Notes: generated by a model from the sequence alone, not told the origin. 64,000 nucleotides of DNA from Hyalangium minutum (GCF_000737315.1 NZ_JMCB01000017.1:62001-126000), one strand, 5' to 3'; positions 1-14,752 are shown, counted from the first letter of the stretch. Program-made: numbers and translations.

Positions 1-158
1 CGCCCCGCGGTGCTCGGCCGAGGAGAGAAGTGTCCTCCGGAAGGGCCAGCGGCGGCGTCACCGCAGCCCAGGCTTCCGAGGCACAGCCCCCCCAGGAGCA
101 AGGAAAGAATCAGTCCGGTTGGCCTCCCTAACCTCAGCCACTGCTTGAGCTGGTGCAT
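1..158 (-). CDS. Predicted lipoprotein, 5' part only (runs off the left edge; absent from the ORF track)
   Basis: Manual translation from ATG at 158: MHQLKQWLRLGRPTGLILSLLLGGLCLGSLGCGDAAAGPSGG..., a basic n-region, hydrophobic h-region and lipobox SLGC, open to the window edge; GAGG/AGGGG upstream. Confidence 0.65.
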   Translation of the reverse strand, partial: MHQLKQWLRLGRPTGLILSLLLGGLCLGSLGCGDAAAGPSGGHFSPRPSTAG

Positions 159-231
159 ATGCGCCCCTGACCTCGTGTGAGACAGAAGCTGCCTGTCCGT
201 GAGAGCGGAACTGGGGCCTCTGTTCACAAGG

Positions 232-257
232 GAGGCTCCGGGCGCTCGGGCTATGCA
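232..257 (-). promoter_or_regulatory. Copy of TGCATAGC-N15-CTC motif upstream of the edge lipoprotein gene
   Basis: Minus strand reads TGCATAGC ccgagcGCCcggagc CTC; 73 nt upstream of ATG 158. Confidence 0.55.
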
Positions 258-280
258 CACTTTTTTGGCGAGGAGCACCG

Positions 281-3200
281 TCAAGGCGAGGGCTGGGCCT
301 GAGCCTCCAGCCCACGCAAGGGCCCAGCCTGGCCGGCGAGAATGAACGGCGCCCAGAAGTGCGGATGCGGCTGTGTCTGGCGCAGGGTCCGCATCGCCTG
401 GTGCAGCGCGGCGGAGCGGCCCTCTCCCGCCAGCAGATGCTGGTAGTAGAGCGCCATGAGCTGGTGGGTCACCGTGTCATCGACTTTCCAGAGGCTGGTG
501 ACCAGCGACTCGGCACCGGCCACCATCAGGGCCCGGCGCAGGCCGTAGACCCCCTGGCCGAGGCGCACCTCCCCCCGTCCCGTGTCGCAGGCCGACAGCA
601 CCACCAGCTGCGTGCCCCACAAGTCGAGCCCCGCCAGCTCCAGGGCTGTGACAAGGGAGTCCTCACGGGCAAGCGCCCTGGGCGGCCCCGGCGGGGCCCT
701 CGTGCCCGCGAGCACCAGTCCGGAGCGCAGCAAAGGATCGGCGAGGGGCTGCTGCGGTCCCGCGTCACCGGCGGCACCAAAGTAGCCCACGGCCCGGGTG
801 GAGCCTGAAGGGGTGGAATCCTCGAGAAAGAAGCCGTGGGTGGCGACGTGAAGGATCCCCGGCGGCTTCAGCGTCAACAGCGCCTCCTTGGTGGCGGCGG
901 GCCCCAGCAGGAGCCGCGCCTCGGGAAACAGGCGGTGAATGGTCTCGGCCTCCTTGCGTGTGCCGGGCAGCGAAGGCCAGGGCTGATCGCTCCCCTCCGA
1001 GCGCTGCGCGGAGAGGACACGCTCCACGGAGGCAGAGCGCTTCGTGAGGGCGGGCACCCCTCCGCTGTCCAGGGAGGGAGCAGCGAGAGCGGGGACAAAC
1101 TGAGGATCGGCCAGGACGACCACGGAGTTGGCAAGCGGCAGCTCCTCGGGACGCGGCAGCGCCTCCTTGCCCGAGGTGAGATAGGTGATGTCCATGCGCT
1201 CCACCAGGTAGCGGCGGCCGTCGTGGAGCGCGGCGAACGGGACGAGCGCGAGCTGGCCATCGGGTGAGACGAACAGTCGCTGCACCTTGCCGAGGTGTGG
1301 CGCGATGGGACGGAACACGCGCTGGTAGAGGACCTGGGCTGCGGCGGAAGCGTCCGCCGTCCGGCTCTCGAGCGCCTGATGCAAGCGCAGGACAGCGCGA
1401 TCGATGCGCTCCGCAGGGCCGAGATCCACCGCATGGGTGCGGCCATCCGCGAACAGCAGGAGCGCGAGGTAGCGCAGGGACGCAGGCGCCTGCGAGGCGA
1501 GCGCGCCACGCATGGGGATGAGCAGGCTGTCCCGGTAGGCGACGAACTCGACGAGCGCGCTCCCCCGTGGGAGGGCCTTGACCACACGAGGGATGATCTC
1601 CTCGGGAGACGGGAGCGAGGACAGGGCTCGCATCGGCGCCGAGCGCTTGGCGAGACCTGCCTCGAGGGCATCCCCCTCGTCGGCGAGCTGCTGGAGGCGA
1701 AGCTGATGGTCCGCCGGCGAGAGCGTGCCGGGGCCCGAGAGCGCCAGCGTGGAGAGCTGGGTCCGCACGGCGCGCAGGCTCTCGAAGGTCCTGCGATCCT
1801 CCTCCCCCAAGCCGCGGGAGATGAGGTGGGAGAGGTGGGTCAGCTCTTCCACCGAGCGGCCCTTCCGGAGGAGCGCGGCGGCGAGGGCGAGATGGCGCAC
1901 GCGGGGCTCCTCCGGATGCGCGCTGGCGAGCGCATAGAGCTCCTCCTCCTCTCCTCGCAGAAGGCCCAGGTAACGGGTCAGGCGCACCTCCGAGACGCCA
2001 AGGAGCTCGCGGCGCAGGAACACCTCGGAGGCGGTGAAGGCCCGCGCATAGAACGGCAGGGCTTCGGCAAGACGCTGCTGAGAGAGGGAGAACCGGGCGA
2101 GGTGAAGGAGTGTGGTGATGACCTGGGGATGGTGCTTGCCCAGGGTTTCCTCCCCTACCGCGAGCGCTCGCTCATACAGGGGCCTGGCCCTGTCGTGGAG
2201 CCCCTGGCGCTGATAGAGGAGGGCCAAGCTGGTGAGCGAGGCGGCCACGAGCATATGGCTCTGCCCCAGCGCGGCCTCCCGGAGGGCCAGTGCACGTGCG
2301 TAGAGCCTCTCGGCCTGCGCATAGAGCCCCTGGCACGCATAGAGGTTGCCGAGATCATTGAGCGACTCCGCCACGTCGGGATGACTCTGGCCCAGCGCCT
2401 CCTCCCGGATGGCCAAGGCGCGCTCATACAGCGGCTCGGCCCGGGCATAGAGCCCCTGCTCCTTGTAGAGGTTGGCGAGGTTGTTGAGCGAGACGGCCAC
2501 GACAGGATGGTGCTCGCCAAACACCGCCTCGCGGATGACGAGCGCACGCTCATGCAGCTGCTGGGCCCTGCTCGCGTTCCCCTGCCGCTGATAGAGGAGG
2601 GCCAGGTTGTTGAGCGTGGCCGCGACATGGGGATGCTGCTGGATCTGGGACTGCTCCCAGATGGCCAGGACGCGCTCATACAGGGGCTCGGCCCGGGAGT
2701 AGAGCCCCCGGTCATCGTAGAGGACGGCCAGGTTGTTGAGCGTGGCCGCGACATCCGGGTGGTTCTGGCCGAGGGCCGCTTCGCGAATGGCGATGGCTCG
2801 CTCGTAGAGCGGCTCCGCCCGGGCATAGAGCCCCTGCTCCCGATAGAGGTTGGCCAGGCTGTTGAGCGCGATGGCCAGATCGGCGTGGTCGCGGCCGCTC
2901 GCAGCCTCCCAGATGCGGATCGCCCGCTCGTACAGGGGCTCGGCCCGGGCGTAGAACCCCTGGTTCTTGTAGAGGTTGGCGAGGTTGGTGAGCGACGCGG
3001 AGACAGAGGGGTGCTTCTTGCCCAGAGCGCGCTCGCGGATGGCCAGCGCCCGCTCATGCAAGGGCTCGGCCCGGGCGTAGAGCCCCTGGTCATCCAGGAG
3101 GGTGGCGAGGTTGTTCAACGACATCGCGACATCGGGGTGATGCGTGCCCAGCGCCGCTTCGCGGATGGCCAGCGCACGCTCATACAGGGGCTGGGCCTGG

Positions 3201-3601
3201 GCCTGGAGACCCTGGACGAAGAAGAGCGAGGCGAGGTTGTTGAGTGTGGTGGCGACGTCGAGATGCTCCTTGCCGAGCACTTGCTCCCGAATCGCCAGCT
3301 CGCGCCGCATCAGCGGCTCGGCGCGGGCATAGGCACCCATCCGCCAATGAACCTCGCCGAGCAGGTGGAGGCAGTGGGACACCTCCAGATGTGTCCTGCC
3401 AAGGAGCTCCTCGCGCAGGTGCAACGCGCGCTCCGCGATCGGGACCGCCTCGGTGTAGCGCCCCTCATCCTTCAGCCGGACGCTCTCGTCGAAGGCGCGC
3501 TGGGCCTCCCTCCACCGCTCCTCCGTGGGAACCCTACCCCTCCCCGCGCACCCTGCCGCCCCCACCAGAATGAGCACTGCCGCCACAAGTCCTTGCCGCA
3601 T
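281..3601 (-). CDS. TPR-repeat CHAT-domain (caspase-like) protease, predicted lipoprotein
   Basis: Start moved to MRQGLVAAVLILVGAAGC (GGAGGGGAG RBS, lipobox AAGC); 11 x 42-aa TPR repeats; CHAT motifs LHVATHGFF (His) and VVLSACDTGRG (Cys), C-terminal HPHFWAPFIL. Confidence 0.93.
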   Translation of the reverse strand: MRQGLVAAVLILVGAAGCAGRGRVPTEERWREAQRAFDESVRLKDEGRYTEAVPIAERALHLREELLGRTHLEVSHCLHLLGEVHWRMGAYARAEPLMRRELAIREQVLGKEHLDVATTLNNLASLFFVQGLQAQAQPLYERALAIREAALGTHHPDVAMSLNNLATLLDDQGLYARAEPLHERALAIRERALGKKHPSVSASLTNLANLYKNQGFYARAEPLYERAIRIWEAASGRDHADLAIALNSLANLYREQGLYARAEPLYERAIAIREAALGQNHPDVAATLNNLAVLYDDRGLYSRAEPLYERVLAIWEQSQIQQHPHVAATLNNLALLYQRQGNASRAQQLHERALVIREAVFGEHHPVVAVSLNNLANLYKEQGLYARAEPLYERALAIREEALGQSHPDVAESLNDLGNLYACQGLYAQAERLYARALALREAALGQSHMLVAASLTSLALLYQRQGLHDRARPLYERALAVGEETLGKHHPQVITTLLHLARFSLSQQRLAEALPFYARAFTASEVFLRRELLGVSEVRLTRYLGLLRGEEEELYALASAHPEEPRVRHLALAAALLRKGRSVEELTHLSHLISRGLGEEDRRTFESLRAVRTQLSTLALSGPGTLSPADHQLRLQQLADEGDALEAGLAKRSAPMRALSSLPSPEEIIPRVVKALPRGSALVEFVAYRDSLLIPMRGALASQAPASLRYLALLLFADGRTHAVDLGPAERIDRAVLRLHQALESRTADASAAAQVLYQRVFRPIAPHLGKVQRLFVSPDGQLALVPFAALHDGRRYLVERMDITYLTSGKEALPRPEELPLANSVVVLADPQFVPALAAPSLDSGGVPALTKRSASVERVLSAQRSEGSDQPWPSLPGTRKEAETIHRLFPEARLLLGPAATKEALLTLKPPGILHVATHGFFLEDSTPSGSTRAVGYFGAAGDAGPQQPLADPLLRSGLVLAGTRAPPGPPRALAREDSLVTALELAGLDLWGTQLVVLSACDTGRGEVRLGQGVYGLRRALMVAGAESLVTSLWKVDDTVTHQLMALYYQHLLAGEGRSAALHQAMRTLRQTQPHPHFWAPFILAGQAGPLRGLEAQAQPSP
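2078..3463 (-). repeat. 11 tandem 126-bp coding repeats (42-aa TPR, kinesin-light-chain type)
   Basis: Consensus GLYARAEPLYERALAIREAALGxxHPDVAxSLNNLAxLYxxQ counted 11 times in the translation. Confidence 0.9.
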
Positions 3602-3640
3602 GCTCCCCTCCCGAATGGCTCTCTGCGAGAGCGACGAAGA

Positions 3641-3669
3641 GAGCCACGCGGCACGCCCGCTATGCAGAG
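3641..3669 (-). promoter_or_regulatory. Copy of TGCATAGC-N15-CTC motif upstream of the CHAT gene
   Basis: CTCTGCATAGCGGGcgTGCCgCGtGgCTC; 24/29 identical to the copy at 8690-8718; 39 nt upstream of ATG 3601. Confidence 0.6.
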
Positions 3670-3683
3670 ATTTCCCCTGCGCC

Positions 3684-3709
3684 TGCATAGCGCGGCCGCT
3701 CCCTGTCTC
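3684..3709 (+). promoter_or_regulatory. Back-to-back copy of the motif pointing antisense into the sigma gene
   Basis: TGCATAGC gcggccgctccctgt CTC; forms a 10-bp inverted repeat (3658-3667 / 3683-3692) with the minus-strand copy. Confidence 0.4.
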
Positions 3710-3733
3710 CATACAGTCGTGATGCCCCTACCC

Positions 3734-4609
3734 TCAGTGCCCTGCTTCGCCGCCCTCTTCCTGTCCCAGGATCTGGCTGAGGCTCACGTCGAACCGGCTC
3801 TGGATGGCGGTCATGAGGCTGTCGAACTCTTGAGAGGACAGGCGCAGCGTCTCTCGGAGGCGGTGCTTCGTCTCCTCATACACCCGCTGCCGCACATCCT
3901 TGAGCCAGCGGGAGATCGTCGACTGATCCTTGCCAAACAGCGGCCCCATCCGCGTCGTGGGCAGCCCCTCGAGAAAGTGCAGCCGCAGCAGGTAGCGCTG
4001 ATCGTCCGAAAGGGCGGCGAAGGCCGCGCGCACGGCCCGCCGGAACTCGTGGCGGTAGCGGCTCTTCACCAGCGCCAGCTCCGCGTCCGTTCCCAGCGTC
4101 GGCAGCTCCTCGAGCGCCGCAAGGCCCGCCTCCTCACTGACCGCCCGGACCGAGACGCCTTGCCGGATCGCCATGCGCACGGCGATGACCTTCATCCAGC
4201 TCAGCAGGGCTCCCCGCCCGGTGTACGAGGCAAGCCGGGGCGGCGCCTCGGGCGTGCTCAACAGCAGATGCATCCGGAGCTGCTGGCAGACCTCGTCCAG
4301 CGTCGTGTGGGAGAGCTTGAGGTAGCCCAACAACGCGGGAAGTCTCGCCATGTATTGGTGCTCGAAGAGCTCGCTGGCTCCGGGCACGCCGCTCACACAG
4401 GCGCACGCGAGATACAGGCCCTCGAGGTCCAGCTGCTCGATATGGACCGCGAGCGGTACATCCTCGGGAGCTTGGGTCAGCAGCCCGGTGAGGTGGAGGC
4501 TGAAAACCTCCGTGGGCAAGTCCACTTCTGGCCACTTGCGCCGCCCGGCCTCCCAGGCGCGCCGAATCAAACTCTCGAACGCTTCGTCATCCTGTGGCGG
4601 CTTTTCCAT
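3734..4609 (-). CDS. ECF-type sigma-70 factor with N-terminal extension (myxobacterial type)
   Basis: Region 2-like LLSWMKVIAVRMAI; region 4 LSDDQRYLLRLHFLEGLPTTRMGPLFGKDQSTISRWL; divergent from a zinc-finger kinase. Confidence 0.85.
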   Translation of the reverse strand: MEKPPQDDEAFESLIRRAWEAGRRKWPEVDLPTEVFSLHLTGLLTQAPEDVPLAVHIEQLDLEGLYLACACVSGVPGASELFEHQYMARLPALLGYLKLSHTTLDEVCQQLRMHLLLSTPEAPPRLASYTGRGALLSWMKVIAVRMAIRQGVSVRAVSEEAGLAALEELPTLGTDAELALVKSRYRHEFRRAVRAAFAALSDDQRYLLRLHFLEGLPTTRMGPLFGKDQSTISRWLKDVRQRVYEETKHRLRETLRLSSQEFDSLMTAIQSRFDVSLSQILGQEEGGEAGH

Positions 4610-4683
4610 CGCACCACCCTACCTCTCTTGTTCTCAGTCTACCGCCCTCCTTGACGGGTGGGCGGAGATTGGTGTCGTCTGTC

Positions 4684-7600
4684 ATGGCTCCCATGCTGCG
4701 TACCTCCGCGCTGGCTGAATCGCCCTGTCTCACGGACGAGCTCCTGGCAGGCTTGGTTGACGGCCAGCTGACGCTGGAGGAGCGGGAACGTGTCCATGCG
4801 CACGCGGCCCGGTGCAAGAGCTGCTGCGAGCTACTCGTCGCCGTTACTCGCGGGGGCCTGAGCCAAGAAGTCCTCCCAGTCTTCTCCTCCCAACCCGCCG
4901 AGCCTGCCGAGCCTGTCCCGGCTGACTGGACGCCCCCCGAGGAGTTCCACCAGTTCCGGCTGGTCCGGCCGCTCGGCCGCGGCGCCATGGGCATCGTTTA
5001 TCTGGCGCAGGATCGCACCCTGGACCGGCACGTCGCGGTGAAGTTCATCGCGGCGCCCTGGCCCGATGCCCGGGCCCGCGAGCGCTTCCAGACAGAGGCG
5101 CGCGCCATCGCCCGCCTGAACCACGTCCATGTCGTCACCGTGTTCAGCGCCAGCGAGATCGAGGGTCATCCGTACATCGTCTCCGAGTACCTCACCGGCT
5201 CCAGCCTCGCCCGCCTCGCCCTGCCGCTCCCCTGGCGGCGCGTGCTCGACCTGGGCATCGGACTCTCGCAGGGGCTCGCGGCGGCACATCGTCAAGGCGT
5301 GCTCCACCGCGACCTCAAGCCCGATAATCTCTTCCTGACCTCCGAGGGAGAGGTGAAGCTGCTCGACTTCGGCCTGGCCGAGCTCGTGGACTCCAGCGCG
5401 CGCGCGGAGTCCACCGGGGTGCGCACCCCCGCGGGGACACCGCGCTACATGGCCCCGGAGCTCTTCCGAGGAGAGCTGGCGACCCCCCAGAGCGACCTCT
5501 ATGCGCTCGGACTGATCCTCTACGAGCTCTGCACGGGCACGCTGCCCTCGCGGCACCGCTCCGGCCCGCCCGCCCCGGAAGAAGCGCCCCCGGCCCACAC
5601 GCTCCCGGAGCGCGTCCCAGGGCTCGCCCCGGAGTTCGCCGCCCTCATCGAGCGCTGCCTGCACGCTGACCCACAGGCGCGCTTTCCCTCGGCAGAGGCG
5701 CTCTGCGCCGAGCTCGAGCGGCTCGAGCCCCTCCACGCAGCAGCCACGCTCCCCACCGGCAATCCCTACCGGGGACTGGCCCCTTTCGAGGCCGAGCACC
5801 GCGAGCACTTCTTCGGCCGCGACGCCGACATCCGCGCCGTCATCGAGCGGCTGCGCCACCAGCCCGTCGTGCTCGTCACGGGAGACTCGGGGGTGGGCAA
5901 GTCCTCTCTCTGCCGGGCGGGCATCCTGCCGCGTGCGGCCCGCGGTGCGCTCGATGAGTTCCTCAACTTCTCCACCGTCACGCTGGAGCCCGGCCGCCGT
6001 CCGGTGGCGGCGCTGGCCGCGGCGCTCGCCCCCGTGCTGGGACTCCCGGAGGCGGAGCTTGGGACCCGGCTCAACGGAGAGCCGGACTGGCTGGGGCCCG
6101 CGCTCCGCGAGACGTGCCAGCAGGGACGCGGCCTGCTCCTCTTCGTCGATCAGCTCGAAGAACTCGTCACGCTCAGCGAGCCTGCTCAGGCGGCACGGTT
6201 CGCGAGCCTGCTGGGAGAGCTCGCCCTGCCCGCTCCCGGCGTGCATGTGCTCCTCGCGTCGCGCGGCGACTTCCTGACCCGCGTCGGCGCGCTGCCGAGC
6301 CTGGGAGATGCCGTCGAGCGCGCGCTCTACCTGCTTCGGCCCCTCTCCCCGGACGGAGTGCGCGAGGCCATCACCGGCCCCGCTCGTAGCCACGGCGTCG
6401 TCTTCGAGTCGGAGGCCCTCGTCCAGACTCTTGTCGAGGCCACGGCGCAAGGCTCGGGCAGCCTGCCGCTCCTTCAGTTCACCCTGGCGGAGCTCTGGGA
6501 GCGCCGCGACACGGAGAGGCACTGCATCACTCGAGCGGCGCTGGAGGGGATGGATGGAGTGGCCGGCGCGCTGTCACGGCATGCGGACGGCGTGCTCGCG
6601 CGCCTTGATCGGGCCGAGCAACAGGCCGCGCGGCGCCTGCTCGGCCACCTCATCACCCCAGAGGGCACCCGGAGCGCACGAACCGAGGAGGAGCTCACCA
6701 GCAGCTCGGCGGAGGCCCGGACCGCCCTGCGGGTGCTCATTGAAGGACGCCTGCTGCATGCACGGGGAGAGGCTGGCGGGGCAAGCTATGAGCTGACCCA
6801 CGAGGCTCTCATCGCGAGTTGGAGCACGTTGCGCCACTGGCTCGATGAGGACGCGGGCCTTCGCGCGCTCCGCCAACGGCTGGTCGAGGTAAGCGCGGAG
6901 TGGGAGCGCCTCCGCCATGCGGACGAGCTGCTCTGGAAGGCGCGGCAGCTCACCGAGGCCCGCGCGCTCGACGCCACCTTGTTGGGAGTGCGCGAGCGGT
7001 CCTTCCTGCGAGCGTCCCACCGCGCCGTGCGCCGCCAGAGCCTGCGCCGTGGACTCATCGCGCTCCTGCTCCTGCTCACCGTGGCTGGCTCCTATGGAGG
7101 GCTCCGCCTGCAGGAGCACTTGGCGGTCCAGCGCTTCGTCAGTGCACGCATGGAGCAGGCCCGTGTCTTGATGGCGGAGGGCCAGGCGCAGGGCCAGCGC
7201 TCCAGCACCAACCGGGAGCTGGCCCTCGCCTTGTTCGCGGGCAAGCCTCCGGGCCCTACCGCGGCCCAGGAAGCCCTGGATCCGCTGGGCCTTTGGCTGA
7301 GCGCCGAGGAGCACTGGGGCCAGGCGCTCGACGAGTACAGGCAAGCTGACTCCACGCTCAGCCAGGCCGAGCACAGCCTCGAGGAGGTGCTCGATCGCGG
7401 CCACGAGGAGCCCGAAGCGCTCCAACTCCTGCTGAAGATCCTCCTTGAGCACATCGCGCTGACAGAGCGCTTCCACCGTCCGGAGGAGCGTGCCCCGTTG
7501 CTGGACCGCTTCGAGAGGCTCGCTTCCAAGCACCCGGAGTCGAGCGCCCTGCTCCACGCACCGGCCACGCTCGAGCTCGAGACCGAGCCCCCGGGCGCGC

Positions 7601-8661
7601 ACGTCGAGCTGACGCGCTATGTGAACTCTCACGGGCTCCGGAAGGAAGCGCCCGTTGACGGCATCGAGCCCCTCTCCACCCACTCCGCCATCCGCCTGCC
7701 ACTCCCGGCCGGGGCTTATCACCTCCGCCTCACGCGAGAGGGCCACGCCCCCGTGGAGCTGCCCCTGCTGCTCGAGCGCGGCCAGCGGGAGCAGCTCCGC
7801 CTTCGCCTGCCCAGGGCGAGCGAGGTACCTGCGGGCTATGTCTACGTCCCCCCGGGCTGCTTCCTCATGGGCAGCAATGCACCAGAAGAGGAGCGCGAGT
7901 TCCTGCACAGCGCGCCGCTGCACCGGCGCTGCCTCTCCGAGGGATACCTCATCGGACGAACCGAGGTCACCCTGGGCGACTGGCTGCTCTATTTAAAGAC
8001 GCTGCGTCCGGAAGACGCGGCTCGGCGCCTCCTCGAGACCCCGCACCGGGATCAAGGCAACAGCGCCATCATGCTGCGGCACTTGCCGGAGGGCGGCTGG
8101 AGCTACTCCTTCTTCCTGGTGAACGGACAGGTGCTCGAAGCGCGCGAGGGCGAGCCCATCCGCTACCCGGGACGCAGACACCGCCAGGAGCAGGACTGGC
8201 GCCGCTTTCCCCTCTCGGGCGTCTCCGCCAGCCGCTTCGAGCCCTACCTCGCGTGGCTGTCGTCCTCCGGGCGCCTGCCGGGAGCGCGGCTGTGCGGTGA
8301 ACTCGAGTGGATGCGCGCGGCCAGCGGCGCGGATGATCGCAAGTATCCTCATGGCGACATCCTCCTGAATGACCACGGCAACTTCGATTTGACCTACGGC
8401 CGCCGGCCTGACGCCTTCGGGCCCGACGAGGCCGGCGCGCACCCGGCCTCCGTGAGCCCCTTCGGGCTGCACGACATGGCCGGCAACATCTTCGAGCTCG
8501 CCCGCGCCGAGACCCAGGACCTCGGCGAATATGTCCTCCTGGGAGGCGCCTGGTACTTCGAGCGCGTGAGCACCCTGATCGCCAATCGCCAGGCAGGGAC
8601 CCCCACGCTCCAAGACGCTCGCGTCGGCTTTCGCGTGTGCGCCTCCATGCCGGCTCCTTGA
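4684..8661 (+). CDS. Zinc-finger (ZAS-like) + Ser/Thr kinase + nSTAND-type NTPase + TM helix + FGE-sulfatase-domain protein
   Basis: HAARCKSC (HxxxCxxC); LGRGAMG, HRDLKPDN, DFGLA; NPYRGLAPF..FFGR, GDSGVGKS, LLFVDQLEE; TM LIALLLLLTVAG; YLIGRTEVT, SPFGLHDMAGN, GFRVC. Confidence 0.92.
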   Translation: MAPMLRTSALAESPCLTDELLAGLVDGQLTLEERERVHAHAARCKSCCELLVAVTRGGLSQEVLPVFSSQPAEPAEPVPADWTPPEEFHQFRLVRPLGRGAMGIVYLAQDRTLDRHVAVKFIAAPWPDARARERFQTEARAIARLNHVHVVTVFSASEIEGHPYIVSEYLTGSSLARLALPLPWRRVLDLGIGLSQGLAAAHRQGVLHRDLKPDNLFLTSEGEVKLLDFGLAELVDSSARAESTGVRTPAGTPRYMAPELFRGELATPQSDLYALGLILYELCTGTLPSRHRSGPPAPEEAPPAHTLPERVPGLAPEFAALIERCLHADPQARFPSAEALCAELERLEPLHAAATLPTGNPYRGLAPFEAEHREHFFGRDADIRAVIERLRHQPVVLVTGDSGVGKSSLCRAGILPRAARGALDEFLNFSTVTLEPGRRPVAALAAALAPVLGLPEAELGTRLNGEPDWLGPALRETCQQGRGLLLFVDQLEELVTLSEPAQAARFASLLGELALPAPGVHVLLASRGDFLTRVGALPSLGDAVERALYLLRPLSPDGVREAITGPARSHGVVFESEALVQTLVEATAQGSGSLPLLQFTLAELWERRDTERHCITRAALEGMDGVAGALSRHADGVLARLDRAEQQAARRLLGHLITPEGTRSARTEEELTSSSAEARTALRVLIEGRLLHARGEAGGASYELTHEALIASWSTLRHWLDEDAGLRALRQRLVEVSAEWERLRHADELLWKARQLTEARALDATLLGVRERSFLRASHRAVRRQSLRRGLIALLLLLTVAGSYGGLRLQEHLAVQRFVSARMEQARVLMAEGQAQGQRSSTNRELALALFAGKPPGPTAAQEALDPLGLWLSAEEHWGQALDEYRQADSTLSQAEHSLEEVLDRGHEEPEALQLLLKILLEHIALTERFHRPEERAPLLDRFERLASKHPESSALLHAPATLELETEPPGAHVELTRYVNSHGLRKEAPVDGIEPLSTHSAIRLPLPAGAYHLRLTREGHAPVELPLLLERGQREQLRLRLPRASEVPAGYVYVPPGCFLMGSNAPEEEREFLHSAPLHRRCLSEGYLIGRTEVTLGDWLLYLKTLRPEDAARRLLETPHRDQGNSAIMLRHLPEGGWSYSFFLVNGQVLEAREGEPIRYPGRRHRQEQDWRRFPLSGVSASRFEPYLAWLSSSGRLPGARLCGELEWMRAASGADDRKYPHGDILLNDHGNFDLTYGRRPDAFGPDEAGAHPASVSPFGLHDMAGNIFELARAETQDLGEYVLLGGAWYFERVSTLIANRQAGTPTLQDARVGFRVCASMPAP

Positions 8662-8689
8662 TGGCCTTCGCGCGGAGAAGCCGGAAGCG

Positions 8690-8718
8690 CTCTGCATAGC
8701 GGGACTGCCTCGCGCCTC
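8690..8718 (+). promoter_or_regulatory. Copy of TGCATAGC-N15-CTC motif upstream of the ADYC gene
   Basis: CTCTGCATAGCGGGacTGCCtCGcGcCTC; 73 nt upstream of ATG 8792. Confidence 0.6.
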
Positions 8719-8791
8719 CTCCAAGTGAACCCACAAGGTTCGAGGCCACTCTCCCAGGCAGCTCCACTCCTGCCGTCAGAAAGAGGTTCCC

Positions 8792-9841
8792 ATGAAGAGC
8801 TCGCTGATCCTGCTCCTATGTCTCCTGGCCAGCACCTCCACACGAGCCGCTGTCCCCGAGCGTCCCAAGCCTGCGCGGCCCGCGCCCTGCCAGGGCCAGA
8901 CCCACCCGCGCACCTCCTGGCCCCAGGGCACGATGCTCTGGGGAACCGCACGCCAGACGTCCGAGGACGCGATGAGCAGCGTGCTGACGTCGGTCTACCT
9001 GGACGGCCTTCTCCTGAAAGGCGCTCCGCGCCAGAGCGCGAGCTGGGAGAAGGGCCAGCTGACCGTACCGGGACTCGAGCCCGCGCAGCTGGCTGGAGCC
9101 CTGCTGCGCGGCACCGCCAGTGACGGAGCGTCCGTGGAGGTGGCCCTCTGTGGCGCGGAGCGCTCGGCGGAGAATCCGGCGTTGCTCTGGTACCAGATCG
9201 AGCTCTGGAACCCTCGCACGTCCTCCTGGGAGAACCCGTGCATCGCCACGGCGCGGGTGCCTTCGCCCCGGGTGCTGGCCGTGAACGACCTCTGGGATGC
9301 CACCGGGGCCTCCAAGCATGTGGAGGGGCAGTTCACCTTCGCGTGTGAGAATGGCGCCATCGCCAAGTGCGTCCGCTGGGGCTACACGCCCTGGGAATCC
9401 AAGGACGGGCGCTCAATGCGGGAACTGCACCAAGCGTGCACGCGCATGGCGCGGGCGGACTATTGCGGCAACGGCCGCAGCCACACCCGCGAGGACACCC
9501 CTCTCGATATCTACGACAGCCTCTCGGTTCTCGCCCGGACGCGCGAGCTCTCGTCCGCCTGGGATCCGGCGCGCGCGTCATTCGAGGCGGCGTGGACGCC
9601 CGACGGCGCCGCCTGCCTCTCGCGGACACGGGATGGGCGGGCCCTGGAGACCCTGCGTCAGGAGTGCCCTGAACTCTTCGAGGAGAAACCGAGAGACCTT
9701 GGAGAGGGCGACCAGTGCACCTGGGTGCGCAAGGGCTCGCACGAGGAGGAGGCGCTGCTGCGCAACCGCTCCTATGCGCCGGCCTCGCTAGCCGGAGACC
9801 ACGAAGGCCACGACGAGCGTCACGATCGCGGGCATCAGTAG
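8792..9841 (+). CDS. Secreted ADYC-domain protein
   Basis: Signal peptide MKSSLILLLCLLAS; FTFAC..GAIAKCV.WGY.PW and HQACTRMARADYCG motifs. Confidence 0.85.
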   Translation: MKSSLILLLCLLASTSTRAAVPERPKPARPAPCQGQTHPRTSWPQGTMLWGTARQTSEDAMSSVLTSVYLDGLLLKGAPRQSASWEKGQLTVPGLEPAQLAGALLRGTASDGASVEVALCGAERSAENPALLWYQIELWNPRTSSWENPCIATARVPSPRVLAVNDLWDATGASKHVEGQFTFACENGAIAKCVRWGYTPWESKDGRSMRELHQACTRMARADYCGNGRSHTREDTPLDIYDSLSVLARTRELSSAWDPARASFEAAWTPDGAACLSRTRDGRALETLRQECPELFEEKPRDLGEGDQCTWVRKGSHEEEALLRNRSYAPASLAGDHEGHDERHDRGHQ

Positions 9842-10417
9842 CAACCCCAGCAGAAGCCACGCGGCGGGATGGGCGAAGTTCAAGGTCCAGCCGATCCCCA
9901 CCAGTTTGGGAACCCAGAGCCGGCGGTCCTCGGGGTTGCGATAGAGGAACGCTCCATACCCCTTTGGCAGGGACTCGCCCTCGGCCTTCATCTGCTTCAT
10001 GGCCACGGCGAGCCCCCGTCCCCCCGCTACCAGCGCCAGCGCGATCGCCCCAAAGCACACTCCCAGGACGACCCGCGGTGAGGGCGGACTCGACGAGGGC
10101 AGCAGCACCGCCAGGAGCGCAACGATTCCCACCACTGCGATGGACACCCAGCGCACGATGTTGCCGCAGGCGTGCGCAAGCTGGGGGAATCGCGTCCGGC
10201 TCGTGCGCTCGATGGCCACAGCTATCAGCTCAAGGAAGAGGGCCAGTCCCACTCCGAACAGGAGCGGCCCGAAGACCCCTCCGAACGTCTTCGTGGCCCA
10301 GCCGTTCGGCACGCCTCTGGGACCCCAGTGCACCACCCACCGTGCCGGGAGCGCGTCCCATCGGCTGGCGAGCCACGCCGCCGCCGCTATCAGCATCGCT
10401 AAAGGCATGAAGCGCAT
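9788..10417 (-). CDS. DUF1648/DUF5808-type membrane protein (SdpI/YvaZ-like)
   Basis: WDALPARWVVHWG...PNGW; YRNPEDRRLWVPKLVGIGWTLNFAHP; AGGAGG RBS before ATG 10417. Confidence 0.85.
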   Translation of the reverse strand: MRFMPLAMLIAAAAWLASRWDALPARWVVHWGPRGVPNGWATKTFGGVFGPLLFGVGLALFLELIAVAIERTSRTRFPQLAHACGNIVRWVSIAVVGIVALLAVLLPSSSPPSPRVVLGVCFGAIALALVAGGRGLAVAMKQMKAEGESLPKGYGAFLYRNPEDRRLWVPKLVGIGWTLNFAHPAAWLLLGLLLMPAIVTLVVAFVVSG

Positions 10418-10514
10418 GCCGGGCCCTCCTAAGGTTCTCGTCAACAATGGCGCGTCCCCGCGCCGCGACGCCACCCTGGCTGGCCAGCGGGGGAGCCCCA
10501 CCCCGCAAATGTTA

Positions 10515-10548
10515 AAGCGCGGAAGGAGCGGCCCCTCCTTCCGCGCTT
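10515..10548. terminator. Perfect 14-bp-stem hairpin, probable intrinsic terminator for the minus-strand transcript
   Basis: AAGCGCGGAAGGAG-cggccc-CTCCTTCCGCGCTT; the minus-strand stem ends in TT and continues TAACATTT. Confidence 0.55.
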
Positions 10549-10718
10549 CAGTCCCCCCCGGCTGCTATGCACCTGGTGAGAGGCACATGGGATTTTTTCC
10601 ATGCGTTACTTGTGCCAAATCGACCTGGGTACCGTGCTGTTCCGGAAATCAGGGACTTGAAGACGGGGGTAAAAAATGACCACCTGACGAGTTTCGTCAC
10701 AAGGTGACGCAAGCAGCG

Positions 10719-11510
10719 TCAGGAAGTGACGCCAGGCTGGAGGATGAAGACCCGATCCAGCCGGGTGCTCCCTCGACCGAGCGGCTCCTCCAGACGATAG
10801 TCGAAATCATAGGTGGCCAAAAGGTTCAGCCCCGCCAAGCGGAAGAGGCGCCGCGCCTGGGGCCCGTCGTAGGTGCGGAAGAACCACTCGGTCTCGATGA
10901 GCATGTCCTTGCCCGGCCCGGTAATCCGCAGGCGGTTGCGCATCGGCGAGCGGCGGCGACGGCGATCCGGCAGCCCCTCGCGGGTGTTGCAGACCACGGT
11001 GTCCCGGCCGACTCGGCCCACCCAGCGCTCGCGCTCGAAGGTGGTTCGCGGGTACTCGGTGAGATGGAAGCCGAGCACGTACACCCCCTTCGGCTTGAGC
11101 AGCCGCCGGGTGCTCTCCAAGTGCGCGCGGGCGGCAGCCTCGCTGTCCAGGTAGCGGAAGGTGGACACGAGGTTGAAGGCCAGGTCCACCCGGCCCTCCA
11201 GCTCGGGTGCGGAGAACGACTCCATGCGGGACTGAGAGAGGCGGATGCGGCGCCGCTGCGCTGGAGTCAGGCGCCGACGGGCGTGCGCGAGCATAGGCTC
11301 GGAGATGTCATAGCCGACGATCTCGAGCCCTCGGCGCGCGGCCTCCGCAACGAGCCGCCCGGCGCCACAGGCTGGCTCGAGCCACAGCGAGCCGCCGGTG
11401 CCATACTGCTGGTTCACCCCGAGCAGGAAATCCATCTCCTTCTCGGTGTCGGTGCCGAAGATGGCCTCGTAATACTTGGGGTGGGTGTACCAGTCGGAGC
11501 GTCGTTCCAT
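10719..11510 (-). CDS. Class I SAM-dependent methyltransferase
   Basis: WLEPACGAGR motif I, GYDISEPML, DLAFNLVSTF; start could be as far up as 11564. Confidence 0.9.
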   Translation of the reverse strand: MERRSDWYTHPKYYEAIFGTDTEKEMDFLLGVNQQYGTGGSLWLEPACGAGRLVAEAARRGLEIVGYDISEPMLAHARRRLTPAQRRRIRLSQSRMESFSAPELEGRVDLAFNLVSTFRYLDSEAAARAHLESTRRLLKPKGVYVLGFHLTEYPRTTFERERWVGRVGRDTVVCNTREGLPDRRRRRSPMRNRLRITGPGKDMLIETEWFFRTYDGPQARRLFRLAGLNLLATYDFDYRLEEPLGRGSTRLDRVFILQPGVTS

Positions 11511-13507: not shown

Positions 13508-14752
13508 TCACCGCCCCTCTCGCACCCGTGGCCGCACCCGCTGGCCCGGCAGCAGCTTGGAGGACGTCAGGACGAGCTCGCCCTCGGCCAGCCCCTGTAC
13601 CACCTCCACTTGCTCCTCGCCTCGCAGCCCCAGCGTCACGTCCTTGCGCACCGCTCGCCCATCCTGAGGGACCAGCACCCATGGCTGCTCCGAGGCCGTG
13701 TCCCTCACCCCCTCCGTGGGCAACAGGAGCGCGCGCTCCTTTCGCCCCACCTCGATCTCCACGGACACCGTCATCCCCGGCCTCAGGTAGCCCGGTGGCT
13801 GCGGCACCGCGAGCTTCACCTCCACTGTGCCCCGATCTGGATCCACTGACGGCGCCACCGTCTCCACTGTCGCGGCGAAGCGCTCCTTGGGGAATGCATC
13901 CGCGGACGCCTGCGCGGGCTGTCCCTTCTGGAGGAAGGCGAGGCTGCGCTCATCCGGCTCCACCGTGAGGCGCGTCTCCCCCACCCGGGCCAGCGTCAGC
14001 AGCACCCGGCCCGGCTGCACCGAGTCCCCCGGCTCTACCTGCCGTCGCAGCACCACCGCGCGCACCGGCGCCCTCAGCGTGGCGTCGTCGAGCCGCTCCT
14101 GGGCCGCCTTCAGCTCCGCCTCGGCCTGCTCCACCCCAGCCTCCACGAGCCGGACCTCGGCTCCCCCTTGAGCGCTGGCGGTGGCCTGGGCCTGGACGCT
14201 CGACAGACGGCTGCGCGCCACCTCTCGCGCGCTCTGGGCCTGCTCGAGCTGCTCCTGCGTCAGGGCGCCCTCCTCCCGCAGCTTCTGGGCCCGCTCGAAG
14301 GCGCGCTCTGCCTGGTCCCGCTCCAGCTCGGCCTGCCGGACGGCCTGCGCCCGCTGTGGCGCGCTCACATCCAGCAACTGCTTGAGCCGAGCCCGAGCCT
14401 GGAGGACTCCGGCGCGAGCGCGAGCCACGTCCGCCTCCAGCGTGGCGGACTGCAGCTTCAGCATCAGCTGACCGGGCTCCAGCTGGGCGCCCTCCTCCAC
14501 CGCCACCGTCTCCACCGTCCCGGAGAGCACACTGGCCACGGACACCAGCGCTGGAGGAGAGGCCCGCCCGCTCACGACAATCCGGTGGACGAGAGGCCCC
14601 GAGCGGACGCGCAGGGCCTCCACCTCGGCTCCTCGCAGCGAGCGGGCCACCCCAAAGACGGCCAAGAGTCCCACCACCATGAGCAGCCCCGTCCCGAGCG
14701 GGTGCTTCCGCGCCCACCTCGTCAGCCTGGAGCCCCCAGTGTGCAGCGCCAT
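13508..14752 (-). CDS. Efflux periplasmic adaptor (MacA/HlyD-like membrane fusion protein)
   Basis: TM anchor, biotinyl-lipoyl-like VETVAVEEGAQL, coiled coil, LRAPVRAVV, LRPGMTVSVEI. Confidence 0.92.
   Translation of the reverse strand: MALHTGGSRLTRWARKHPLGTGLLMVVGLLAVFGVARSLRGAEVEALRVRSGPLVHRIVVSGRASPPALVSVASVLSGTVETVAVEEGAQLEPGQLMLKLQSATLEADVARARAGVLQARARLKQLLDVSAPQRAQAVRQAELERDQAERAFERAQKLREEGALTQEQLEQAQSAREVARSRLSSVQAQATASAQGGAEVRLVEAGVEQAEAELKAAQERLDDATLRAPVRAVVLRRQVEPGDSVQPGRVLLTLARVGETRLTVEPDERSLAFLQKGQPAQASADAFPKERFAATVETVAPSVDPDRGTVEVKLAVPQPPGYLRPGMTVSVEIEVGRKERALLLPTEGVRDTASEQPWVLVPQDGRAVRKDVTLGLRGEEQVEVVQGLAEGELVLTSSKLLPGQRVRPRVREGR

Follow-up and report, generated by a model that had tools for sequence, protein, structure and literature searches.

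A recurrent bipartite motif in Hyalangium minutum as the candidate promoter of a kinase-associated extracytoplasmic function (ECF)-like sigma factor

The 64,000-nucleotide stretch of Hyalangium minutum DNA analyzed in this study (GCF_000737315.1, NZ_JMCB01000017.1:62001-126000; hereafter the window) carries near its start a gene for an ECF-like sigma factor, a divergently transcribed gene for a membrane-spanning kinase, and several copies of a two-block motif, TGCATAGC-N15-CTC, lying between the genes of this module. The question raised by this locus is which protein reads the motif. We consider it probable, at roughly 0.8, that the motif forms the core of a promoter for RNA polymerase associated with the sigma factor of the gene at 3734-4609, a reading that is built on sequence comparison.

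A total of four exact copies were found in the window, at 232-257 and 3641-3666 on the minus strand and at 3684-3709 and 8693-8718 on the plus strand (Table 1), which are the same coordinates, strands and spacing as listed in the original prediction. All of them lie within the first 9 kb and none in the remaining 55 kb, against an expectation of 0.03 derived from dinucleotide-preserving shuffles, and four or more matches were seen in none of 100 shuffled sequences. The octamer TGCATAGC alone occurs five times where 0.76 occurrences are expected, and relaxing the motif by one or two mismatches returned only background (26 found, 18.4 expected). A site matrix of 39 columns, built from 23 sites and used for the matrix scores quoted here, detected no site in the window beyond the four copies.

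Three of the copies face genes for exported proteins, at the distances of 39-73 nt that had been claimed for them. The CTC lies 73 nt from the ATG of an edge lipoprotein at 158 (copy 1, matrix score 33.5), 39 nt from the ATG of a CHAT-TPR lipoprotein at 3601 (copy 2, score 37.7) and 73 nt from the ATG of an ADYC-domain protein at 8792 (copy 4). The account needs correction for the copy at 3684-3709, which precedes no gene on its own strand and points into the stop-codon end of the sigma gene (3734), to which it is antisense.

Table 1. Positions of the candidate promoter copies and of the genes of the sigma factor module in the window.
Feature	Position	Strand	Description
Candidate promoter copy 1	232..266	-	TGCATAGC 257-250, N15, CTC 234-232; A-tract AAAAAA ~261-266
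Candidate promoter copy 2	3641..3676	-	TGCATAGC 3666-3659, N15, CTC 3643-3641; GGGGAAATCTC upstream
Candidate promoter copy 3	3684..3709	+	Antisense to sigma gene; putative -10 end 24 nt from sigma stop codon
Candidate promoter copy 4	8693..8718	+	32 nt past kinase stop codon; 73 nt before ADYC ATG at 8792
Sigma factor gene	3734..4609	-	291 aa, ECF-like, TIGR03001 'Myxococcales family 1' (Sig-70_gmx1)
Kinase/regulator gene	4684..8661	+	Divergent from sigma gene; 1325 aa; Pfam matches
CHAT gene, predicted target	281..3601	-	CHAT (caspase-like) protease with TPR repeats and lipoprotein signal (…LVGAAGC)
ADYC gene, predicted target	8792..9841	+	Secreted ADYC-domain protein; PF20032, 8.8e-55
Edge lipoprotein gene, predicted target	1..158	-	5' end, 52 codons (MHQLKQW…LGGLCLGSLGCG); runs off the window

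Copies 2 and 3 stand back to back with their octamers 17 nt apart and would be able to form an RNA stem of 9-11 bp. On this ground the motif might be taken for a small dispersed repeat or for a structural element, the latter forming an RNA hairpin or a terminator in the interval that separates the sigma gene from the CHAT gene. However, the predicted fold is no better than that of shuffled sequences (z = -1.49, with 14 of 200 shuffles as good), the copies at 232 and 8693 have nothing to pair with, no terminator-like site was found at the motif copies, and an Rfam search of 1-11000 returned no match. A mobile repeat is further contradicted by the spacers, which are unrelated between copies, and we regard a structural origin of the motif as highly improbable. 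The CHAT and ADYC copies, taken with their three upstream bases, are identical at 24 of 29 nt, the same count as had been reported before. The GCC said to be shared by three of the window copies is indeed present at spacer positions 7-9, but the orthologous loci do not keep it and it is therefore best viewed as GC-rich background outside the motif.

Related loci, designated here by L numbers, were collected by protein look-up together with two collection scans, and 10-20 kb around each sigma gene was covered. The best sigma homologues were found in Hyalangium, other Archangiaceae and Myxococcaceae. The motif recurs beside the sigma/kinase pair in 11 independent loci from Hyalangium, Stigmatella, Pyxidicoccus and metagenomes whose sigma factors are 55-91% identical, and it does so either exactly or with one mismatch within the last two positions of the octamer. 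The octamer, the 15-nt gap and the CTC are kept across these loci while the spacer sequence and the target genes vary. Four copies including the antisense one stand at equivalent places in L002, which has the same gene order and a sigma factor 79% identical, with the equivalent of copy 1 at 14366-14391, after the CHAT gene, and that of copy 2 at 10943-10968. Octamer and CTC are intact in these four copies and the spacers have largely diverged, which constitutes a phylogenetic footprint.

The equivalent of copy 4 in front of the ADYC gene is kept in L002, L001, L005, L089 (Pyxidicoccus) and L090 (Stigmatella), and variants of the motif precede ADYC genes in the paralogous modules L014, L016, L018, L019 and L024. 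Other genes following the motif include a LuxI-type gene in L001, an M16 peptidase gene and a hemerythrin gene in L005, a gene for a 279-aa lipoprotein in L004, genes for Kelch proteins in L007 and L008 (CTC being replaced by CGT in the L008 copy), genes for large and small lipoproteins in L009 and L012, and lipoprotein genes in L089 and L090, the former encoding a small one. All the listed sites lie outside called genes, and those with a downstream gene face that gene, mostly at 10-190 nt from its called start. Most of the products carry signal or lipoprotein peptides.

The distance between the two blocks was found to be fixed, as the pattern TGCATA-Nk-CTC has 22 matches in the related loci at k=17 and 0-4 matches at every other k within 11-23. 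Exact copies are also confined to the related loci, with ten of them in 139 kb (window excluded) against none in the 473 kb of a paralogous set consisting of 75 loci with sigma factors below 50% identity. By our own calculation, the probability of such a split under equal rates is ~4e-7.

Conservation extends beyond the two blocks into flanking columns that had no role in the selection of sites. Among 20 aligned sites, an A-tract occupies -9 to -6 (A in 14/20 at -8 and likewise at -7), Y is found in all the sites both at -2 and directly after the CTC, C occurs in 15/20 at -1 and G in 17/20 at +10, and a G is also conserved at +21. The wider consensus, AAAA-n-T-n-Y-C-TGCATAGC-N15-CTC-Y, is an asymmetric element of ~38 bp with an unconserved 15-nt gap, and its two blocks and upstream A-tract therefore have the anatomy of a promoter with -35 and -10 elements. 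A few sites, in L008 and L017, have CGT or GTC at the -10 position.

The same features bear on the possibility that the motif is an operator bound by a conventional transcription factor, with the real promoters lying elsewhere in the same intergenic regions. Two of the copies form an inverted repeat, GCTATGCAG-N15-CTGCATAGC, which could suit a dimeric regulator, and TGCA is palindromic. Most copies are nevertheless single and strictly oriented to the downstream gene, and the conserved blocks (8 nt, a 15-nt gap and 3 nt) are asymmetric with a fixed, promoter-like spacing. A scan of 1-11000 for sigma-70-type promoters gave no match, so none was detected near the motif copies, and in the locus gene tables the sigma factor is the sole DNA-binding protein that always accompanies the motif. 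Taken with the covariation between the motif letters and the sigma region 4.2 helix described below, these observations make an operator an unlikely explanation.

A sigma-54 promoter of the -24/-12 type might also be considered, since cTGCA or YTGCAT resembles the -12 element TTGCA, some copies have a GG ~8-10 nt upstream, and myxobacteria have many sigma-54 activators. However, the 20 aligned sites do not place a GG at -24 exactly 10 nt before a GC at -12, as the distance from GG to TGCA is 7-9 nt, no G is conserved at -24 and the columns -12 to -10 contain C12/A8/G7 of 20. Such a promoter leaves no place for the conserved CTC that lies 15 nt downstream, and the locus tables contain no enhancer-binding protein. 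The chance that the motif belongs to this type appears to be negligible.

A promoter motif specific for one sigma factor is expected to change together with the protein that reads it. To find the motifs of the paralogous loci, the sequence just 3' of the sigma genes and that upstream of the ADYC genes was inspected, and the paralogous sigma clades were observed to share the same 8+15+3 layout with other letters (TGCATA/CTC, TGAATA/C[TA]C and TGCGACA/GTC). Sigma factors with the region 4.2 helix [DN]QST.SRW are accompanied by TGCATA-N17-C[TC]C, which has 22 matches, spread over 10 of the 16 loci of this class, and is absent from the SQPT and HRAT classes. The helix SQPTxSRR goes with TGAATA-N17-C[TA]C (8 matches, from 4 of the 5 loci with this helix, and no match in either of the other named classes), whereas for the helix HRATxARW, the pattern TGCGACA-N16-GTC was matched in 4 of 21 loci and nowhere else. 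Two other ways of obtaining these motifs were abandoned. A ranking of 7-mers repeated within each paralogous locus was swamped by coding k-mers, and the loose pattern TG[CA][GA]A[CT]-N17-xxC proved too frequent in GC-rich coding sequence, for which reason the stricter patterns were used.

These clade-specific letters are hard to reconcile with a distant regulator, such as another alternative sigma factor encoded elsewhere for which the proximity of motif and sigma gene would reflect nothing but a conserved neighborhood. Such a factor would not be short of candidates, as myxobacteria encode dozens of ECF sigma factors, and the absence of a motif copy upstream of the present sigma gene would fit with it. 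On the other hand, the sigma/kinase pair is constant but the target genes differ among the loci, and each paralogous clade has its own motif variant at the equivalent place. We therefore consider recognition by a different sigma factor to be improbable.

Several points weigh against recognition by the neighboring sigma factor. Both TGCATA and CTC are unlike the common ECF cores, which are AAC at -35 and CGT at -10. Many ECF sigma factors autoregulate, and there is no motif upstream of this sigma gene. Part of the conservation must be inherited rather than selected since the related loci share ancestry. Finally, the helix classes used for the covariation count were drawn after the data had been inspected. 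Even so, the letters of the motif appear to track the region 4.2 helix, as a sigma-specific -35/-10 code predicts. The proposal from which this study started, namely that the motif is the -35/-10 element of the sigma factor at 3734-4609, thus gains in silico support from the co-occurrence of motif and sigma gene, the fixed spacing, the absence of exact copies from the paralogous loci and the covariation with the helix. A bipartite promoter-like element with fixed spacing lies near the sigma gene, as is expected of an ECF system, and would be recognized by the sigma factor itself.

The genes of the module were mapped with Pfam and NCBIfam scans. The sigma factor matches TIGR03001 with 274.3 bits (cut-off 154.6) over model positions 7-243 of 244 and the ECF family model TIGR02937 (sigma70-ECF) with 47.2 bits (cut-off 42.9). 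It is a divergent ECF member, as Sigma70_r4_2 scored below the cut-off and region 2 gave no match in the Pfam scan. The closest solved sequences to a profile of 28 sigma homologues are sigmaE and AlgU, over residues 122-256, and the top fold matches of the predicted structure (mean pLDDT 76.5) are all ECF sigma factors, including mycobacterial ones, with probabilities of ~1.0 but weak E-values of ~4e-3. Residues 1-95 form a conserved N-terminal extension that is covered by no Pfam family; it contains the motif LYLACAC and two invariant residues, W19 and W26, and is predicted with high confidence to be helical.

The closest well-studied relatives are thus the ECF (group 4) sigma factors such as E. 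coli sigmaE and P. aeruginosa AlgU. The two systems have in common the sigma2 and sigma4 domains, two short promoter blocks at fixed spacing, and a regulator encoded next door. In both, the regulon, which is predicted in the present case, is small, local and composed of envelope or exported proteins. They differ in that the system described here has the candidate elements TGCATA(GC) at -35 and CTC at -10, a ~95-aa N-terminal extension and a region 2 that is missed by Pfam. In addition, its sigma gene has no motif upstream and receives one copy in antisense orientation.

The lack of an upstream copy suggests that the sigma factor is not autoregulated in the usual way, and the positive autoregulation that is common, though not universal, among ECF sigma factors is not seen for this gene. 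The motif was not found in the region 4610-4683 between the sigma and kinase genes. An alignment of nine loci showed this region to be conserved down to a sigma identity of 55%. In the direction of the sigma gene, it contains CGCCCA (4664-4659), a 17-nt spacer and TAGACT (4641-4636), and the same columns in L090 (Stigmatella) read TGTCCA-N17-TACAAT. In the direction of the kinase gene there is an invariant TTGACG (4651-4656), with the kinase ATG ~28 nt further on. This region looks like a separate housekeeping-type promoter region for the sigma gene. In L018, whose sigma factor is 43% identical, a weaker copy, CGCATAGT-N15-CCC, is located between the sigma and kinase genes at 7830-7855 (-) and faces the kinase gene, which may be a direct target of the sigma factor in that locus.

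The regulator gene adjoins the sigma gene in every related locus whose gene table extends that far. Its product consists of an N-terminal HxxxCxxC motif of the zf-HC2 type, a Ser/Thr kinase (Pkinase, 4e-47), an nSTAND1 NTPase and a C-terminal FGE-sulfatase domain, which is C-type-lectin-like, with a predicted membrane span near residue 800. The zinc motif, HAARCKSC, lies within residues 1-60 (4684-4860), where zf-HC2 scores 22.5 bits against a cut-off of 22.2, and HxxxCxxC is also present in the kinase homologue of L018. Its position at the N-terminus of the kinase-STAND-FGE protein suggests a fused anti-sigma domain. The HxxxCxxC motif at the N-terminus of this partner protein is of the kind found in zinc-binding anti-sigma (ZAS, zf-HC2) domains such as those of RsiW and RsrA. 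The motif of the present protein is, by contrast, fused to a kinase, STAND and sensor arrangement rather than to a simple membrane anchor, and its binding to the sigma factor is a prediction.

Sigma factors that are controlled by a kinase have been described in the ECF43 group, where activation by Hanks-type kinases is represented by EcfP/PknT of Vibrio parahaemolyticus and EcfK/PknS of Xanthomonas citri (PMC8999054, PMC13147305). The present sigma gene is likewise adjacent to a gene for a Hanks-type Ser/Thr kinase. Both arrangements couple the sigma gene to a transmembrane kinase with an extracytoplasmic sensor domain, have no separate anti-sigma gene, and are expected to be controlled post-translationally. 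ECF43 sigma factors have, however, lost the acidic DAED motif of region 2.2 and have a conserved phospho-accepting Thr (PMC8999054). In a hand alignment made without structural superposition, the stretch of the present sigma factor that corresponds to DAEDLVQE reads xLDEVCQ in 28 homologues, with the acidic pair kept. The first position of xLDEVCQ is variable (T, M, A, V, L, I), so no Thr is conserved there. The kinase described here also differs from those of ECF43 in the additional anti-sigma-type HxxxCxxC zinc motif and the STAND NTPase. The phospho-switch of EcfP and EcfK is best read as a functional analogue, its defining region 2.2 signature not being evident in the present family.

The sensor half of the regulator resembles a different group of proteins. 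nSTAND1 proteins with FGE or C-type-lectin sensors have been proposed as conflict or antigen sensors of multicellular bacteria (PMC10907252, PMC8195603). The regulator shares with them the nSTAND1 domain and the C-terminal FGE-sulfatase domain, and a CHAT caspase-like protease is encoded nearby. The difference lies in the N-terminal output, which here consists of a kinase and an anti-sigma-like motif coupled to a sigma factor. The predicted output is for this reason the transcription of genes for exported proteins and not a fused death effector.

Taken together, these features lead us to propose the following as the most likely working of the module. The sigma factor would be made constitutively from its own conserved housekeeping-type promoter, and its activity would be set post-translationally by the divergently encoded membrane protein through the zinc motif, phosphorylation, or both. 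The zinc motif, the kinase and the STAND NTPase would lie in the cytoplasm and the FGE/lectin-like sensor outside the cell. A signal reaching the external FGE/lectin-like domain would release or activate the sigma factor, and the local TGCATAGC-N15-CTC promoters would then fire. At these promoters, sigma region 4.2 (helix DQSTISRW) would recognize TGCATA(GC) as the -35 element and region 2 would recognize CTC as the -10 core, while the A-tract occupies the position of an UP-like element. The products induced in this way would be the exported CHAT-TPR lipoprotein, the ADYC protein and the edge lipoprotein, and copy 3 would fire back into the sigma gene.

The CHAT gene, one of these predicted targets, has a Pfam CHAT match of 2.6e-75 in addition to matches to TPR families. 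No family match was found for the edge lipoprotein in Pfam, and its N-terminus has no detectable similarity to the neighbor in L002 and L003.

The antisense copy is not peculiar to the window. A copy without a gene of its own was found 4-70 nt from the stop codon of the sigma gene in seven loci, representing two sigma clades with different motif letters. Three of these are of the TGCATA type, namely the window itself (24 nt), L002 (10900-10925; 23 nt, matrix score 42.0) and L012 (3066-3091; 70 nt). The TGAATA-type copies in L019, L024, L025 and L047 lie 4-37 nt from the sigma stop codon, and all four have CAC at -10. In L001, L005, L007, L008 and L009, the place of the gene-less copy is taken by a motif-driven gene that converges on the sigma gene. 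As the sigma and kinase genes are transcribed divergently, a transcript from copy 3 would be antisense to the sigma gene and could read on as a sense transcript of the kinase gene.

Feedback onto the sigma gene by such an antisense transcript appears plausible. A bolder proposal is that the antisense copy is conserved as a working component of the circuit and would provide hard-wired negative feedback in place of the usual autoregulated sigma/anti-sigma operon. In a wider sense, a promoter code leading from the region 4.2 helix to the letters of the -35 element could be read from the TIGR03001-like family for a set of sigma factors controlled by STAND kinases. We put this reading forward tentatively and think it somewhat more likely to fail than to hold.

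A sigma factor and promoter pair that controls a local regulon of exported proteins is a well-known kind of bacterial switch. What is new here is a consensus for an unstudied family, together with the unusual letters at -35 and -10, the lack of classical autoregulation, and a partner protein in which a ZAS-like motif and a kinase are joined to a STAND-lectin sensor. Our literature search returned no paper for TIGR03001, the ADYC domain or the sigma-kinase-FGE module, and a search with the octamer returned only primers. Kinase-associated ECF groups are not autoregulated and their promoters are therefore not revealed by the region upstream of the sigma gene, so that the motif sites provide a consensus that can be tested. 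The local regulon predicted from them comprises the caspase-like CHAT lipoprotein, the ADYC protein and other lipoproteins. The promoter could also be used to report the activity of a transmembrane STAND-kinase sensor, a type that has been proposed to act in bacterial conflict or self-recognition. The covariation suggests a specificity code, and its three motif classes might be usable for the construction of orthogonal promoter/sigma pairs. The antisense promoter and the helix-to-motif code are in our view the parts most worth following up.

Several smaller features were observed around the motif sites. Just past the candidate ADYC promoter, at 8725-8743, there is a 5-bp inverted repeat, GTGAACC-cacaa-GGTTCGA, which is kept in L002 at ~5845-5863 (-). 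The sequence (A/G)TG(G)AA(C), present at several further sites 5-8 nt past the CTC, possibly marks the region of the transcription start.

The fifth octamer of the window, at 10564-10571 (-), is followed by AAG in place of CTC, does not reach the threshold of the matrix and has no counterpart in the syntenic L002, and it is probably a chance occurrence. A strong GC-rich hairpin, GCGCGGAAGGAG-cggccc-CTCCTTCCGCGC, lies near this isolated TGCATAGC, at 10517-10548. Both are located in a divergent intergenic region upstream of a gene for a DUF1648/DUF5808 membrane protein (9788-10417, -).

Two of the target genes in the related loci show further particularities. The LuxI-type gene of L001 (9573-10022, -), which converges on the sigma gene, encodes a short autoinducer synthase of 149 aa (PF00765, 79.9 bits) matching only the first half of the family model, and the CTC of its motif copy lies 10 nt from the ATG. 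In L005, the motif copy at ~9195-9221 (-), equivalent to L006 1738-1763, lies 1 nt upstream of the called start of the hemerythrin gene. The called frame of this gene shares ~150 nt with the 3' end of the sigma gene, and its start codon is probably mis-called.

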